DNA of 64,000 bases from Selaginella moellendorffii (lineage: Eukaryota; Plantae; Lycopodiophyta): positions 6,413,729-6,477,728 of the forward strand of contig NW_003314261.1 of NCBI RefSeq assembly GCF_000143415.4. The letters are read 5' to 3'. The position numbers were made by a program, and so were the translations under genes. The notes under the pieces are model-generated. The model made no database searches and was not told where the DNA came from. It worked only from the letters and a program-made list of their open reading frames with translations. Of the stretch, positions 29,669-37,935 are shown piece by piece. The first letter of the stretch is position 1. Every line of letters starts with the position of its first letter.

Positions 29669-29831
29669 CGCGATCGAAAGGAGGAATCACTGTAGGCGAT
29701 GAATCGTGAGTGCCAGGAGGACGAATTTGTGCCGCGCAGCGCTAGGGCAGAATTTAGGGTTTATGATAAGTGAGAAAGTAAGATTCCTTTTACATTGCCA
29801 CCTTGGATACATTTTTAGGGTTCTTGAGAGA

Positions 29832-31193
29832 ATGGAGGATCCGCATACTACCTTCCATAAGCAGCTTCCGGTGGCAACTCTCAAGCAGACCATGAAGATG
29901 CCCTATCCCGAAGTCCCTGATGCTGTCAAGAAGAGGTTGGTTAATGAGGTGCTAGCACCGCTTGGCGAGTTGATGCATCGCGGCGGCTATAGTGTGAGGA
30001 GCTGGGACATCCCAGCGGTCATGGATTCGTGGTTTGAGCAGCTGCCCGATCAATCCGATCCCACCGGCTCGTTCTTTAGGATCTATGGCTGGAACTACCT
30101 CTTCTACATGGTAAAAGTTTTCTGCGGTGAAGGCGAAAGCTTTGGATCCCTCCAATCGGGCACCATCGCGAGGCCGGAAGGATGTCTGTTTCGCCATGGC
30201 TTGGACGCTCCGGTGGTGCTCTTCCTGCTCGACTTCTTCAACCTGCCCGAGAAGCTGGAGCTCGTGCAAGACCGGCTCGTCAACTACATGGAGATAACGG
30301 GAGCTCGCGTCGGGGTGCTCACGAATCTCAGCTCGTCGTGGCCGTGCTATCGAGCTGCCGCGGATGAGCTCCTGGTCTCGCCGCGCGTGGATAATCCGCT
30401 CATGGCGTTCGGCTTCGCGATGGAGGTGGCGAGGAGCTTGCATGGACTGCCACTGCTGACGCCGGAAGTGAGGAGCTTGCTGCCTAAGCTCGACTACTCT
30501 CCAGTCCTGGAGATCCTGGGGCACGTGTGCAAGCAGAGCAACATCGATCCACGCAAGATCGTCGACAAGGCAGTCACGGACGACGGATTCAAGTTCGAGG
30601 ATCTGAGCGACGTGGAGACGCTGCCGCTGCATCGCTGTGGGAACACTAACCGCACGGTGGTGGCCGTTCGAGCAAAGTACGCTGGACAGGACGTGGTGGT
30701 GAAGATCAGGGACTTGACGAGTCAGTTCAGGGCCGGTACCAATCTCGCTCTGTCCAGGCTTGCCCTGGAGGTGGATTGCTACATGAAGCTCAGGCACATA
30801 CAGGGGTCTGCGGTTCCCAAGCTTCTGTCGTGGGGGTTCCTCAAGGGGGCGATGTTCGTCTTCGTTATGATGAGCGACGGTGGCATCAGCGAGCTGGAGC
30901 AGTGGTCCAATCCTTCCAAGGCCATTTTCAGCGACCAGGAGGAGACTCTGAGACAGGCGATGGAGTGCTTGCGCGAGATTCACAAGCGGGGGATTGCCAT
31001 CTACGACATGAACACGTCCAAGGTTGTGAGCAAAGTGGACGAGGCTGGGAAGCTCCGTGTTAAGCTGGTTGGATTTGGCAGAGCCCGAGTTACGCAGGTT
31101 TTGTCTCAAGAGTGGTATGAAGCTACTGCCCGTGACCTTGCCCTGCTCAAGAAAGCGTGCCATGAACTGAAGAAAAATTCCGAGAAGTTCTAG
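29832..31193 (+). CDS. Intronless protein with degenerate REase-like N-terminal region and atypical (pseudo)kinase domain
   Basis: VVVK, E..Y..L..IQG..VPKLL, L.EIH.RG, YDMNTSK catalytic loop and GFG in place of DFG. N-terminal RPE...LVNYM....RVGVLTN..W. First ATG in good context at 29832. Confidence 0.7.
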   Translation: MEDPHTTFHKQLPVATLKQTMKMPYPEVPDAVKKRLVNEVLAPLGELMHRGGYSVRSWDIPAVMDSWFEQLPDQSDPTGSFFRIYGWNYLFYMVKVFCGEGESFGSLQSGTIARPEGCLFRHGLDAPVVLFLLDFFNLPEKLELVQDRLVNYMEITGARVGVLTNLSSSWPCYRAAADELLVSPRVDNPLMAFGFAMEVARSLHGLPLLTPEVRSLLPKLDYSPVLEILGHVCKQSNIDPRKIVDKAVTDDGFKFEDLSDVETLPLHRCGNTNRTVVAVRAKYAGQDVVVKIRDLTSQFRAGTNLALSRLALEVDCYMKLRHIQGSAVPKLLSWGFLKGAMFVFVMMSDGGISELEQWSNPSKAIFSDQEETLRQAMECLREIHKRGIAIYDMNTSKVVSKVDEAGKLRVKLVGFGRARVTQVLSQEWYEATARDLALLKKACHELKKNSEKF

Positions 31194-31758
31194 CTTCTAT
31201 TAAAAAAAGTTGAAAACGCAAATCTTGAATTTTGCAAATAAATGCAATATAAATATGACAATTGGTAGTGTTTGAAAAGATTAAGAAAGAAATATATTAA
31301 AAGAAAAAATATTTTCAATTATTAATTGACAATCCACAGTGCAGATAGAAAATTCTTTGCACTCGACTCAAGTTTTCACCCTTAGTTTGCTCAGTAGGTT
31401 TTTAATAGAAAGTTGTCAGCAATTCTGGTGCATTGATGGTTTGTCTTTCAACTAGGTAATGTATGATCTCATGGTGAGGAATCCAACAATTTAGATGTAG
31501 ATATGACAAAGAGTGGTTAGATGAGTATAGGATTATTACATTTAATTAATATGATGAAGTATGGTTTGGGTTGCCAAATTTGAGCTTTGAAAGTCAATTG
31601 CCAGGGTCTTACATGAACTCTAGAAGATTATCAAGTGAGTTTTTCTTGTACACTCAGAAGAAGATTTTCAAGTACACTACAATTTTTTTTTTCTTTTTCT
31701 CTTTGTTGTTGGGCAAACGATGTCATTCTTATTAACGGATGCTAAACGACCCCGCAAT

Positions 31759-34700
31759 TTATAACTCTACAGTGTCCATTACCAGTTGCTGGAGTATTTG
31801 CTTGAAGCCCTGCATGTGCTTGGCAGCCTGTGAGCAGTGTTAATACACTTGCAGTTTTAAAACCGACTACATTCAACCAACCTTTTGGACGGCAAGAATC
31901 TTGGATTCTGCTTCGCTGAGAAGTTCTTCGCCCCTCATTTGCATTTGCGCAATCAATTTTCTCTGTGTTAGCTCTGATTCAAGAAAACACTCGTTTAGTA
32001 AAAACAAGCAACAGAGGGAAAGAGCCTACTTCGTTTTTCCGACAAGGCGTTGAGTTCGTCGTCAGTACATTCCATCTGAGTCTGGATTTGCTCTAATTGT
32101 TCGCTGTGGTGCTTGAACAAGTTGTCAAAATCTTCACAGAGCTTCTTGAAGCTCTTGGCTTTCTCTGTAAATGATATCAGAAGCGAGCCTAAACCAGGTT
32201 TGCTCCACATTAACATACCATGCAGGTCCAGTTCTATCCGACCAAGCTTGTCTCTACATTGTTGAGCATAATCATCCCTGTAGTTTAAAGGAGTTACACA
32301 ACCTTACCAACAACAAATAAAGAGCTTACGTACGTGCCCTTCTTAATCTGTAACTCAACAGAGGCTGCCTCCGATTTGATCGCCTCCGAGGTGGAAGTTA
32401 TTATATGAGCAGTTTTATCACGAACTCGAGACTGCAACTTCTTCTTGAACTTGTTCAGCATGTTCGCAAAGAGCACAACGACCCTGAAAGAAGTTTCGAT
32501 CAGTACAAATCCTGAGGTGCAAAGAATTTTTACCGATCCATGTCATCATCATCGCAGGGATCGCAAATTGGAGACTCTGGAGTAACACTGTTGTCCTTCT
32601 CAAATTTTGGACGCTTTGTTTCTGAAGCCAAATTCACGTGTTCTATGCCGCTTGTCAACTCTGCAAGTGTATACCGCCTGCGCCGCCGGGTCTTGATCTC
32701 TGTCATCTCTTTCGTGGCGCTAAACAATGGCTTGCCAAATTCAACTGGTGGTGCAGCGTCATTGCTTGGTGCTGGAGGAAGCTCCCTCTCACGGAACAGC
32801 TTGGCGGGTCTGTCATTTTCTGAGAGCTCGACTGCACATTAAACCTTAGCGATCTTAAAGACAAGTACTCCAAGATTACCTTCTACGACCATCTCTTTCG
32901 TGGCGCTAATCAATGGCTTGCCAAATTCAAGTGGTGGTGCAGCGTCATTGCTTGGTGCTGGCCTCTCACGAAACAGCTTGGCGGGTCTGTCATTTTCTGA
33001 GAGATCGACTGCACATAAAACCTTAGCGATCTTAAAGACAAGTACTCCGAGGTTACCTTCTACTACCATCTCTTTCGTGGCGCTAAACAATGGCTTGCCA
33101 AATTCAAGTGGTGCAGCGTCATTGGTTGGTGCTGGAGGAAGCTCCCTTTCACGAAACAGCTTGGCGGGTTTGTCATATTCTGAACATAAAACCTTAGCGA
33201 CAAATCGAGGATAATAATCAGAGGTTACCTTCTGCTATAATCCCTTTCGTGGCGCTAACCAATGGGTTGCCAAATTCCAGTGGTGGTGCAGCGTCATTGT
33301 TTGGTGCTGGAAGAAGCTCCCTCTCACGAAACAGCTTGGCGGGTTTGTCGTCTTCTGATAGCTCGACTGCACATGAAACCTTAACAAGAAGTCAAGAATA
33401 ATAATCAGAGGTTACCTTCTGCTATCATCTCTTTCGTGGCGCTAAACAATGGCTTAAGTGGTGCTGCAGCCTCTTTGGTTGGTCTTGGAGGAAGCTTCCT
33501 CTCACGAAACAGCTTGGCGGGTTTGTCATTTTCTGATAGCTCGACTGCACATAAAACCTTTTCCTCTGCAATGTAAAGCATTCAGCACTATCAATAGGTA
33601 CCTGATTCGCCTACCTGGCTTCTGTGTTTTAGGCGCCGCTTTCTTTCTCGGCCGACCTGCAAATAGTGCTGTTAAAGAATGATAATAAGCTGGCATCGTA
33701 GTACCTCGTGCTCTAGTGTGAATCGGGGCCTGGATCTGCCTTTGCACGCTGGGACTTCTCTCTGCCACAAGAAAAAACAGAATTACCAATGTATTACAGA
33801 ACTTCTTTGATACCTTGGATGACCTTGAGTTTCTCGATCGCTTTCTTTGTTGGTCCATCAAGCATAGCCTTCAACTTGCTACGAAGGTGGCCAACGTTTT
33901 CTTTTTCCTCAACCTCTGCTACATCGGGAATTGAATGAGAGGGTACCTCCGGCGAATGCGGAACTTTCACGTTGTCTAAGGGTAAGTCAACAGCCGCTGG
34001 CACCAAACAGGGATATTACAAAAGACCTCTACCTTTAGTGTCCGTATCAAGCCCTGGTACTACGTTGTCGATAGTCGTTGGTACAAGCACATCTACAAAT
34101 AGAAACTTGAGAATTTAGAAGAAAACCTTTCTCGGAGAAAACCGCTACCTCTTGTAGTTCTGTCGTCTGCGCAACCGGGCATGATTGGGAAGTCTGTAAT
34201 TCTTGGCAGAGGCACCGCAATTCCTATTGATGTCTTGCCCGTCCAAGGAATCTGACTACTTGATGGTGGAACTGTTGCATTTAGCGAGGACAGCCTTCCC
34301 CTGCAGCACTCATAAGCGAGCCTTGCATCTTCATCCAGGCAAAAGACTTTAGAACCGCTCATTCGATAAACCAACGCATACCTTCTGAAGAAAATCGAAA
34401 GCGTGCTATAGTTCTTGTTGGAACGGCAGCATCGTCCTGAGGCTTCCAAATAACGAGCTCCAAAGATGACGAGGAGAGCACTAAATCATCATAGCTAGCT
34501 TAGCCGTACTTGTGAGTGTAACTCACCTTTGATCTCTTTGATATTCTTAAAATCAAAATCCATTATCTCTGCAGCGCCTTCAAACTCCTGTTAAGTTTGA
34601 CCTCAGAAACAACTTTGATTGTAATTGCACTCTCTTACTTTGCTTGGTGAGTTTGTGTAGTAGCTGATATGATCCACTCCGATATGCACCCATACTTCTT

Positions 34701-35720
34701 CGTGAGGAGTATGTTCGTTGCCATCGATGAAAACTTGTAAGGCTCGAAAGGAATGAACGCTACAGCATAGAAAAATCCGCACAGTGAGTCAGAAAGTCAG
34801 CACTCTGCTCTCACCTTCTCGATGCTCCCAGGGACTCATTGACCAAGTTAACGAAGGTCCTAATGCCGGTCTTGACATCTGGCCTTTTCATCTCGTGCAT
34901 GGATAGCATTGCCCTCTTCGCAGCATCGTCATCGACTATATCCAGGAGCCTCTTGTGTCTCCTTGTTAATCGAAAAAGTATCTCCGCAGCACTAGCTTGA
35001 AGTTGGAAGTCTCCACACTTCGGGAGAAAAACCTTGAAAAGCTTGTAGCTGCATGAAAACGTTAGAAACGTAAACTGGAATGCATAGCCGAACTCACCAT
35101 CCAGTCACGTGAAGTATCAGAAACTTCTGGTTCTCGGCCGATCGAGTAATCAAGGCACAAAGAGTCTCCACAGAAGCCCGCTTGAGTTTTAAAGACCCCG
35201 ACTTAGCGCAAGCCAACGTAAGAAGCCTGGTGATGAAGTGCTTCCCAGAAAGAACTTTGCCTGTGTAACGAAAGAGAAAGGAAAATCACTAAGGCCTCAT
35301 CTCTACATACGACCGCTCACCTTGAGGATGATCGCTTAGATCTTCGATGACAAACAAAAGCTGCAAATTCAACGACAAAACCTCCCTCCGAGTGAAATCC
35401 CCAGTGACAAGATTATCATAGAGCTTCGCCAGCGCTTCGAAAAACTCCTCAGTCACGAGAATTTCAGGACGCTGAATAGATTGGAGCCGCTTCAGCAATT
35501 CCTCCAAACGCCCACAGTGCCGCCGCTGGAAGCCATGGATTTGGACCTGAAGAGCGGCCACTGCTACTGTGAAAAAGAATCGCCTATACCAAGAAACACT
35601 CACATTCTCCAGGACGCCGCGTAGCCGCGCGAGGTCCAGCTCCACCGACGAATTCGGATCCAATGCGTTGATAATCTCTTCGACATCCCCGGCAGCCGGA
35701 TCCATCCGTGGCGATTCCAT
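31759..35720 (-). CDS. ASY3: Meiotic chromosome-axis core protein (ASY3/PAIR3-like C-terminal coiled coil, SYCP2-like N-terminal domain), about 20 exons
   Basis: C-terminus VVLFANMLNKFKKKLQSRVRDKTAHIITSTSEAI..QRKLIAQ..AESKILAVQK resembles ASY3. PPSSSQ..GKTSIGIAV resembles the ASY3 closure motif. CGDFQLQASAAEILFRLT and IRTFVNLVNESLGASRSVHSF resemble SYCP2. Confidence 0.8.
32706..33560 (-). repeat. Five tandem exon+intron units (~170-190 bp) within the ASY3-like gene
   Basis: Repeated tttcgtggcgcta..ggtgcagc..tcacg(g/a)aacagcttggcggg blocks separated by ~48-nt GT-AG introns. Confidence 0.92.
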
Positions 35721-35864
35721 CGCGCACTCATCCAGAAAAACCCTAGCTAGCTCAAATACCCTGGACTGGGCGGGAAAACGATAGTACACGTAAAAGAATC
35801 GTGGCCGTCAAAGTGTGCGTTGGTCAATTAACGGTAGAGATCGTAGAAACGATAGAGTGATATT

Positions 35865-36720
35865 CTCATGGCCAGAGTTACACAAGGTGTGTCCAACGAT
35901 TGCTCCCAGCGTAAATCCCACAGCGTTTTTGTGAGCAGCAAGCTAGAAATCTAAGGAAGAAATTTCTAAGTTGGATCAAGCAAAAAAAATGTAAACTTAC
36001 TGGCAATCGTTGCGATCTGGCTTCTATCTCCCATCCGCCAAAAGGGTGAAGGCTTGATTTTGATCAGCCAGAGAATGAAACCTTGGATGTGAGTATACCT
36101 CCAAAAAGATTGGAGCGCAGAAAAATTTTCGGATTCTTGACTTTCCATGCGTGCTGCCTTCCAGTTTCTCCTCGACCTGCGGGAACGAAAGAGGAAAGCT
36201 TGTATATAGCCCGGCTTCCACGCTATATACAATAGCCGCAATCCAAAGAAAGTATACAACACTGCAACAAGGAATAACTGAGGAAAAGAAAGGAACGAAG
36301 AGAAATCCATACCAGTGGCAAAACTATTGATGTGCCTTCGCGAGATAAGATTCTTCCAAGAACGGTGCAGAAAACCTGTTAGCAAAAGAATAAAAGCACC
36401 TGAGTAAACAGGAAAGAAAGCTTACGAGAACTTACAGTCATGAGAGCAAGCACGGTGAGAGCTCCAGAAAGAACTATGGCTCGCGGATGCCTCATCGCCA
36501 TCAGAGCTGCGATGATGAAAGTCTCGTCTCCAATCTACCAGAGGAGCACAAAAGAATTAGGCCTAAAGCAGCAAGCATTAGCAACGGAGAGTTCCGGGAA
36601 GAGCAAACGTTATCTTGCTGACAATAATCATAGCAAAGCTCGAGAACACAACGTCCAGCAAGCCATACCCGCTGAAAATCTCCGGTGCTTGGATCAAGAC
36701 CCCAGTACAATTTCATGTTC
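35865..36720 (-). pseudogene. GDT1/TMEM165 (UPF0016) family pseudogene
   Basis: EIGDETFIIAALMAMRHPR, LYTFFGLRLLYIAW, EVEEKLE, a frameshifted (W)GDRSQIATIA and GHTLC, then truncated. Confidence 0.8.
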
Positions 36721-36766
36721 TCATCCATAGAAATCTAGAAACGAACACAAGGAAGAAAGCATCTTA

Positions 36767-37935
36767 CCTGTGCATTTCGCCAGCCTTTCCAGGTGACAAC
36801 GCTCCTGGACGGGATCTTGCCGAAAAGGGCGATTGTCGCTGCTCTGGGCGTAAGACGCAATCGCGATGTTCCAGGAGACGACGTCGCGGTGTCGCATGAG
36901 CGAGTGGAAGATCTCTCGAGCACCGTTCTGGGCGAATGCTCGAAACATTGCGTTGCCAGACGAAGTTCCTCGCTGCGGCATTCTCTCGAAGATCTGGAGG
37001 GCGCTCTTGGCGTCGCAGGAAAGGTCATAGCCGGCGTTGCAAGAGAGCACGGGCATCTCGTGAAAGAGTTTGCTCGCGTGGTCCATATGCCCGGCTCGGA
37101 CATCAGCGTGGATCATAGAGTTCCAAGTCACGACGCTCTTCTCTGCCAGGGAATCGAAGAACCACCGAGCTCGATCGTGCTCGTCACCGTGAATTAACGC
37201 CACCATCATCGAAGAGGAAGTGATAACATTGCACTGCTCCATGGGATCAAACACCGCAATCGCTTTACCTAGATGCCCATGCTGGGCATATGCGCCCATC
37301 CTCGCGTTTCCAGCCACAACGTCTTCTTCGGGCATTCGATCGGACAGCGTTTTGACCTCTTCCAGATGCCCTTTAGAGCATAGCCTTGGATAGCAATGTT
37401 CCAGGAGAGAACGCTTTGAACGCTGAATCCTCTCAAACACAAGTCCCGCGCGATCATCTTGCCCGCTCCGCACAAAAGCGTTTATCAAGACGTTCATGTA
37501 ATCCCTGTGAGGAAGAAATCGATGGCGTGGTCGAGATCGCGTGGCAATCCTGTCTAAAAGCCAGAGGCAGCAACCCATATGCCCGTTTCAAGCATACGCT
37601 TGGATCATCGTTCTCTGTGGTGTGCTCTCGATCTCTCGCCGAATCCACCATGCCGGCGGGCGACGATCATGTTATTCCACGAGAAGACATTGCGTCGCTC
37701 CAGCTTCCTGAAACCTCTCGCATTTGGTGTACATGTGAACGAGGAGATTGCCCAACAGGGTCTGTGAATCCATGCCATGATCGGCGAGCACGGAATGGAT
37801 TCGCCGCCCCTCGAGCAGCGCCTTGGATCCGCACTGCCGCAAGAGAAACGCGCAGAGATCTCCATCCGGATCGCATCGCTGCTGCTCGATTTGCATCACG
37901 GCCTCACGCAAATCAGCTCTTTTCAACCTCGCCAT
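36767..37935 (-). pseudogene. PLS-PPR pseudogene
   Basis: LLRQCG..ALLEGRRIH, LGNLLVHMYTKC, NVFSWN and VVTWNSMI repeats spread over several frames, with deletions. Confidence 0.85.

Follow-up and report, generated by a model that had tools for sequence, protein, structure and literature searches.

Gene model and database identity

The stretch of DNA analyzed here, referred to as the window, comprises 64,000 nucleotides of the genome of the lycophyte Selaginella moellendorffii (RefSeq assembly GCF_000143415.4, contig NW_003314261.1, positions 6,413,729 to 6,477,728 of the forward strand); all coordinates below are counted from its first nucleotide. On the minus strand, at 31759..35720, it carries a gene whose product joins a head resembling the N-terminal domain of mouse SYCP2 to motifs and a coiled coil resembling those of plant ASY3, and which we take to be the Selaginella member of the meiotic axis core proteins. 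The window was read on the minus strand from 31000 to 37500 and translated in three frames, and 22 exons were then joined by hand at GT-AG sites into a single gene. Its introns are short (46 to 60 nucleotides, all GT-AG), and its coding sequence of 2865 nucleotides runs from an ATG at 35720 to a TAA at 31759 and encodes 954 amino acids. Since a stop codon lies in frame 30 codons upstream of this ATG and the N-termini of homologs align with the modeled start, the choice of start codon is supported. Two exons missing from the open reading frame track had been placed at ~35048-34815 and ~34760-34640 by an earlier reading of the same DNA made without database searches (the sequence-only reading). 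Both proved to be real: they are exon 4 (35048-34815) and exon 5 (34759-34639) of the hand-built model, and once spliced they give the peptide that was quoted for them, CGDFQLQASAAEILFRLT...KTGIRTFVNLVNESLGASRSVHSFRALQVFIDG..EEVWVHIG.

All 954 residues of the hand model are identical to RefSeq protein XP_024532214.1 (P0017), isoform X1 of LOC9633014, a record that bears the label "uncharacterized protein"; spliced RNA contigs, described below, agree with the model as well. Two further RefSeq isoforms differ from X1 by four residues each. Isoform X3 lacks KDNV (amino acids 420-423; 33975-33964, at the start of exon 10) and isoform X2 lacks VDLS (amino acids 645-648; 33008-32997, at the start of exon 16), and in both cases the missing residues fit alternative AG acceptors 12 nucleotides downstream. 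A second locus or haplotype (P0014, LOC9654595) shows 14 residue differences from P0017. The older GenBank models, EFJ15601 and EFJ38834 (P0001 and P0016), are fusions with an upstream gene of the GDT1 family, and P0001 is additionally mis-spliced around exon 7.

An N-terminal module homologous to that of SYCP2

The first 350 residues comprise two subdomains, both delimited with an AlphaFold2 model and its match to the mouse SYCP2 N-terminal domain (PDB 5IWZ). An armadillo-repeat-like (ARM) helical subdomain occupies amino acids 8-241, encoded by exons 1-4 (34832..35699, minus strand), and is followed by a PH-like or Spt16M-like beta-sandwich with a C-terminal helix at amino acids 249-349, encoded by exons 5-8 (34303..34755, minus strand). 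AlphaFold2, run on a set of 16 plant and algal sequences of the N-terminal module (A1), modeled residues 1-350 with a mean predicted local distance difference test score (pLDDT) of 88.2 and a predicted template modeling score of 0.86. The model has 14 helices within amino acids 8-241, mostly with pLDDT above 90, and seven strands in the sandwich, which ends in a helix at 339-349.

The likeness to vertebrate SYCP2 that the sequence-only reading had pointed out was borne out by sequence searches. A phmmer search with exon 4 alone against 177,635 PDB sequences matched mouse SYCP2 (5IWZ_A) at an E value of 0.065, pairing GDFQLQASAAEILFRLT with GDYELQVGIVEALCRMT; the Selaginella block RTFVNLVNESLG was also aligned to SYCP2. 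This is the same alignment that the sequence-only reading had given. When the A1 sequences were used as a profile against the same PDB sequences, 5IWZ_A was returned at an E value of 1.5e-11 (47.3 bits), with profile positions 89-288 aligned to chain residues 122-350, and the sole other match had an E value of 0.18. This hidden Markov model alignment takes in RSVHSF..EEVWVHIG..ISYY against ..LSFYI of SYCP2.

Structural comparison, which the same reading had proposed as a check, gave a similar result. In a Foldseek search of the PDB, 5IWZ was the top hit (E value of 8.2e-11, TM scores of 0.66/0.62), followed by a next hit at 0.22, with all others at a TM score of ~0.45 or below. VIA-align superposed 310 residues of the model (5-350) on chain residues 19-385 of 5IWZ at a Z score of 26.4 and a root-mean-square deviation of 3.6 Å; WAPL came second at Z 14.2, and generic armadillo proteins trailed at Z ~12 to 13. 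From the profile E value, the AlphaFold2 model, Foldseek, and VIA-align, we conclude that amino acids 1-350 are homologous to the ARM-like and Spt16M/PH-like domain of SYCP2, beyond a mere likeness of class.

A skeptic might prefer to see here a generic armadillo/PH module that came to resemble SYCP2 by convergence or that shares its fold without being homologous, given that many ARM proteins reach Z 12 to 14 against the model, that the Pfam models of SYCP2 find no match, and that identity to 5IWZ is only 16%. We regard this as very improbable: the profile search, which used sequence only, singled out 5IWZ among all PDB sequences tested, and 5IWZ is the sole structure matched over both subdomains in their relative orientation (Z of 26.4 versus 14.2, TM score of 0.66 versus 0.22). 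Furthermore, the module occupies the position that it has in SYCP2, with a closure motif immediately behind it and the homologous coiled coil much farther downstream (PMC6349405).

Precomputed Pfam annotation labels the plant relatives of this module PF26290 (DUF8079; Pfam 38.1), a family to which a PH-like cluster from euglenozoans is assigned as well. The language-model neighbors of amino acids 1-350 include SYCP2, Red1 (PF07964)/Rec10, and euglenozoan DUF8079/PH clusters, all of which we treat as leads only.

Closure-like motif, REC8-type motif, and coiled coil

Directly after the PH helix, and within the same exon 8, sits the closure-like motif TVPPSSSQIPWTGKTSIGIAVPLPR (amino acids 359-383; 34201..34275, minus strand), a predicted binding site for the HORMA domain of ASY1 identified by its pattern and by its likeness to ASY3. 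The sequence-only reading had reported such a motif downstream of the module, and its location at 34275-34201 agrees. Seven proteins contain the pattern [RKG][KR]xS[IVM]G[IVLF], each of them a single time, at amino acids 371-400 in Selaginella, Diphasiastrum, Adiantum, two Riccia species, and Marchantia, and at amino acid 33 in an angiosperm ASY3 (Papaver, P0023); a regular-expression search returned no match to it in the Calypogeia protein. In Arabidopsis, the N-terminus of ASY3 reads ..HPSSQSRKISIGVMA (PMC9957857), and residues 2-50 bind the ASY1 HORMA domain (PMC6349405). By analogy, the Selaginella motif would bind ASY1 in the same manner.

Further along the protein, amino acids 449-461 (33854..33892, minus strand) form a REC8-binding-like motif, GHLRSKLKAMLDG, which matches the REC8-binding peptide of Arabidopsis ASY3, ..DVLRSKLWEILGK / ..VLRSKLWEILGK. 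Mutation of L196, L200, I203, and L204 in the Arabidopsis protein abolishes REC8 binding (PMC12871700), and in Selaginella LRSKLKAML (amino acids 451-459) places L, L, M, and L at the equivalents of these four residues. The Papaver equivalent is SLKLKLWEMLG, and the motif was not found by regular expression in the other non-seed homologs. A REC8-binding role for the Selaginella motif is thus suggested by its residues.

The protein ends in a coiled coil at amino acids 778-945, encoded by exons 17-22 (31789..32562, minus strand), which by its sequence can be assigned to the ASY3 family. The protein matches Pfam ASY3-like (PF20435) at an E value of 2e-12 and 46.6 bits, above the family cut-off of 25.7. 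The match is confined to the coiled coil (profile positions 619-787 of 793), whereas Papaver ASY3 covers positions 3-792. A BLASTp comparison of the coiled coil with Papaver ASY3 gave an E value of 6e-17 at 27% identity over 171 amino acids, in line with the ASY3-like coiled coil that had been proposed downstream of the closure-like motif.

Transcript evidence for a single gene

Part of the stretch is present in 20 public RNA runs, the best of which contain about half of its 31-mers, as is expected for a fully spliced mRNA. We compared contigs of four runs from four studies (X1, X5, X6, and X7) with 31400-36800 of the window. Contig joints confirm 15 introns (1-5, 7-12, and 17-20) at the modeled positions in three or all four of these runs, among them the introns next to exons 4 and 5, and the confirmed joints carry CT..AC ends, which correspond to GT..AG on the minus strand. 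One spliced contig of 2366 nucleotides from run X1 covers exon 1 through exon 13, so that a single spliced molecule holds the ARM and PH exons, exon 8 with the closure motif, and the opening exon of a repeat array described below. Other contigs, of 642 to 769 nucleotides, connect exon 17 to downstream coiled-coil exons (18-21 in the listed joints).

These joints bear on the idea that two adjacent genes are present, one encoding the ARM and PH subdomains (34.3 to 35.7 kb) and the other a short ASY3 beginning at the closure motif, with the joined model a chimera. Chimeras do occur at this locus, as the GenBank models here and at the twin locus, joined to the upstream GDT1 gene and mis-spliced, attest, and as does the X1 contig, which also enters the GDT1 neighbor. 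A separate gene made of the 34.3- to 35.7-kb exons was what the sequence-only reading had named as fatal to its own interpretation, and the transcripts answer in the negative: in all four runs, the joint 34328|34382 (intron 7) splices the closure-motif exon to the final exon of the PH domain, X1 carrying it within its exon 1-13 contig. The terminal helix of the PH subdomain and the closure motif moreover lie within the same exon 8, and both ends of the protein occur together in six full-length homologs of other genera. The chance that two genes have been joined in error is therefore extremely small.

Some variation among the contigs was also seen. Intron 6 (34481-34526), whose 46 nucleotides are not a multiple of three, is kept in an X6 contig that is contiguous over 34382-34586 and removed in X1, and an X5 contig misses 3 nucleotides at 34562 in exon 6. 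Several single-nucleotide polymorphisms are common to X5, X6, and X7 and seem to derive from P0014, the second haplotype or locus with its 14 amino acid differences.

Distribution in plants and probable loss of the head

When exon 4 (77 amino acids) was compared exhaustively by phmmer with 1.84 billion representative proteins, 12 matches were returned, the best being in S. moellendorffii. Six full-length homologs combine an N-terminal match with a C-terminal Pfam ASY3-like domain, namely, those of the lycophyte Diphasiastrum, the fern Adiantum, and the liverworts Calypogeia, Riccia (two species), and Marchantia, so that the survey of other land plants that had been suggested did find head and ASY3-like C-terminus together in liverworts, a fern, and a second lycophyte. 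The zygnematophyte alga Spirogloea has the N-terminal module only, in fragmentary models. No named seed-plant protein was among the 12 exon-4 matches, which include three fragments without species assignment (P0003, P0005, and P0006); this absence is consistent with a loss of the head in seed plants but is not proof of it. Word-index searches for homologs returned, among the matches listed, only near relatives and one angiosperm ASY3, and a search this narrow says nothing about gymnosperms, mosses, or hornworts.

That angiosperm protein, Papaver ASY3, begins ~30 residues before its closure motif and matches Pfam ASY3-like along its whole length. It agrees with the literature, in which the N-terminal domain is described as "missing in plant ASY3" (PMC12871700, a 2026 preprint), and with the sequence-only reading, which had Arabidopsis ASY3 and rice PAIR3 starting at the closure motif and having no globular N-terminus. 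The further claim that the module was lost later, in seed-plant or angiosperm evolution, is supported but had been published before: according to Tromer et al. (2021, Open Biol 11:210049, PMC8131943), the ARM and PH domains disappeared from the ASY3 of Spermatophyta, and Marchantia polymorpha is among the intermediates of their ARM-PH similarity path (PMC8131943). The earlier inference was thus correct but not new. That the head was instead gained by fusion in non-seed plants, with the short seed-plant ASY3 ancestral, is barely credible, since the distribution in plants, patchy as it is (no moss, hornwort, or gymnosperm sequence among the matches listed), takes in liverworts, lycophytes, ferns, and a zygnematophyte alga, the combination of module and coiled coil is also found in animals, fungi, and euglenozoans (PMC8131943), and parsimony strongly favors a single loss along the stem of the seed plants.

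Beyond Tromer et al., the literature on ASY3 in non-seed plants yielded only a survey that lists the presence of ASY3 (PMC9957857). Since the conclusion of Tromer et al. appears in print only in figure legends (PMC8131943), we consider it under-used rather than unknown. What is modestly new here is an RNA-verified Selaginella model, direct profile and structural statistics, and the collinear closure and REC8-type motifs. The contrast between the RefSeq "uncharacterized" label and the GDT1-fused older GenBank models is also added.

Linker features specific to Selaginella

In BLASTp comparisons of the disordered middle of the protein with its homologs, the closure motif was the only significant similarity. 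Two features of this linker set Selaginella apart and are possibly new, if minor, details. The first is a tandem array of exon-plus-intron units covering exons 13-17 (32704..33560, minus strand), recognized by Tandem Repeats Finder (period of 177, 4.8 copies, 80% matches) and by comparing the peptides exon by exon. Its five peptide copies, of 41 to 50 amino acids each, follow ..SENDKPAKLFRERELPPAP.NDAAPPLEFGKPLFSATKEM.. and are rich in proline and acidic residues (KPAKLFRER...FGKPLFSATKEM). BLASTp gave no significant match for the repeat peptide in the Diphasiastrum, Calypogeia, Adiantum, Riccia, Marchantia, and Papaver homologs. The second feature, found with the regular expression RGRP, is a basic AT-hook-like motif at amino acids 489-501, HTRARGRPRKKAA (also written RARGRPRKKAAPK), which spans the exon 11/12 junction (33634..33720, minus strand) and has the core RARGRPRKK at amino acids 491-499. 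It is present at both Selaginella loci (P0017 and P0014) and absent from most homologs, Riccia fluitans alone having a weaker GRPKR. Speculatively, these two features might supply the disordered linker with multivalent contacts or with contacts to DNA.

Neighboring genes

Directly upstream of the axis gene, on the same minus strand at ~35880-36800, lies a gene for a cation transporter of the GDT1/TMEM165 family, and the fused GenBank model P0001 carries Pfam GDT1 at residues 3-49. The X1 contig that bridges the two genes shows many mismatches at 36099-36261. Still further upstream, an open reading frame of 285 amino acids (36724-37578, minus strand) contains PPR repeats (Pfam PPR, E value of 1.3e-22), and more PPR-like open reading frames extend to ~38000. 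Just downstream of the 3' end of the axis gene, an intronless open reading frame of 495 amino acids on the plus strand (29706-31193) had no Pfam match at an E value of 0.01 and is overlapped on the opposite strand by one of 403 amino acids.

Interpretation

Altogether, these results indicate, at a probability that we put near 0.93, that the locus is the S. moellendorffii ortholog of the meiotic axis core protein (ASY3/PAIR3, SYCP2, and Red1), encoded by a single 22-exon gene with the ancestral full-length architecture. The architecture and homologies rest on the present analysis, and the protein interactions would be those described in Arabidopsis, mouse, and yeast. By that analogy, the C-terminal coiled coil would pair with an ASY4-type partner and build tetramers and then axis filaments, while the closure-like motif (amino acids 359-383) would be gripped by the ASY1 HORMA domain and thereby bring ASY1 to the axis. 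The LRSKL motif might tie the filament to REC8 cohesin, and the ARM and PH head may, like those of SYCP2 and Red1, offer a further surface for binding chromosomes or partners, one with which seed-plant ASY3 would have dispensed.

Several observations weigh against this assignment. No contig of the four runs spans the repeat exons 13-17. Depth is continuous there, and a break of this kind is expected because de Bruijn assembly breaks at repeats; the continuity between exon 13 and exon 17 rests on that depth and on the open frame, together with the RefSeq model and the architecture of the homologs. The RNA runs have no stated tissue, and transcription and splicing were seen in runs of at least four studies. 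The X1 contig extends upstream into the neighboring GDT1-like gene, which points to some read-through or assembly merge, while in three of the four runs coverage is essentially zero at 35744-35924, so that the GDT1-like gene is normally a separate transcript. The Pfam check proposed by the sequence-only reading failed: in hmmscan, SYCP2_ARLD (PF18581) and SYCP2_SLD (PF18584) matched no single sequence, at limits of E ≤ 10 for the exon pieces and the 16 N-terminal sequences, E ≤ 1 for nine phmmer matches including the six full-length ones, and E ≤ 0.1 for P0017, P0021 (Marchantia), and P0023. The plant N-terminal module lies outside these animal-centered models though it is homologous to the SYCP2 N-terminal domain. 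Lastly, every protein-protein function proposed above is carried over from other species.

A narrower scenario, which we offer tentatively and with more doubt than confidence, is that the ASY3 of seed plants originated when the protein was cleanly truncated where the PH subdomain meets the closure motif and that Selaginella retains the state before truncation, with recognizable closure and REC8-binding motifs. Separately, and just as tentatively, the five-fold repeat and AT-hook-like motif could form a new array for multivalent docking or DNA binding in an axis core protein. If the truncation scenario is true, non-seed plants, such as the transformable Marchantia, would provide a natural system for the role of the ARM and PH head and for what replaced it in seed plants.

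ASY3, SYCP2, and Red1 are so diverged that they have long been linked by function and coiled-coil architecture alone. A plant protein with a head of the SYCP2 type and with motifs and a coiled coil of the ASY3 type represents a direct sequence bridge and indicates that the lineage leading to the seed-plant models lost the head. Of the bridge from SYCP2/Red1 to ASY3 that the sequence-only reading had drawn, the SYCP2 side stands by profile and structure, and the Red1 side is at present a language-model lead.

Comparison with known systems

Tromer et al. grouped Red1/Rec10 of fungi with KKT17/KKT18 of kinetoplastids as members of a single SYCP2-type family whose head is of the ARM-PH kind (PMC8131943). 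In our analysis, what links these proteins to the Selaginella head is a Pfam accession in common and a language-model similarity of 0.83, not an alignment, and KKT17/18 act at kinetochores rather than at the meiotic axis.

Mouse SYCP2 (5IWZ; ARLD plus Spt16M-like) has in common with the Selaginella protein the two-subdomain fold, the relative orientation of the subdomains, and the conserved blocks GD[FY].LQ....E.L.R, ..F.NL.N..LG..R.V..F, and E..WI.F. The HORMAD closure motif of SYCP2 directly follows the N-terminal domain (PMC6349405), and the closure-like motif of Selaginella is likewise placed. The two proteins differ in the coiled coil, which in Selaginella is that of the plant ASY3 Pfam family and not of its animal counterpart. 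In an assay that showed binding for ASY3, SYCP2 failed to bind REC8/RAD21L (PMC12871700).

Among non-seed plants, orthologs of the Marchantia Mp2g06990 type (PMC8131943) likewise have an ARM and PH head, a disordered middle, and an ASY3-like coiled coil. Marchantia P0021, which has a Pfam ASY3-like match, aligns with the Selaginella protein over the entire N-terminal module and closure motif. At 954 amino acids, the Selaginella protein falls short of the ~1130 to 1270 of these orthologs, and its five-fold exon repeat and AT-hook-like motif are lineage specific relative to these orthologs.

Angiosperm ASY3/PAIR3 (Arabidopsis AT2G46980 and Papaver P0023) has a homologous coiled coil and shares with Selaginella, in the same order, PSS.Q, then [RG]K.SIG[VI], then LRSKL...L. 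The angiosperm proteins start ~15 to 30 residues before the closure motif and have no folded head, whereas the Selaginella protein has 350 extra N-terminal residues that make up the ARM and PH subdomains.

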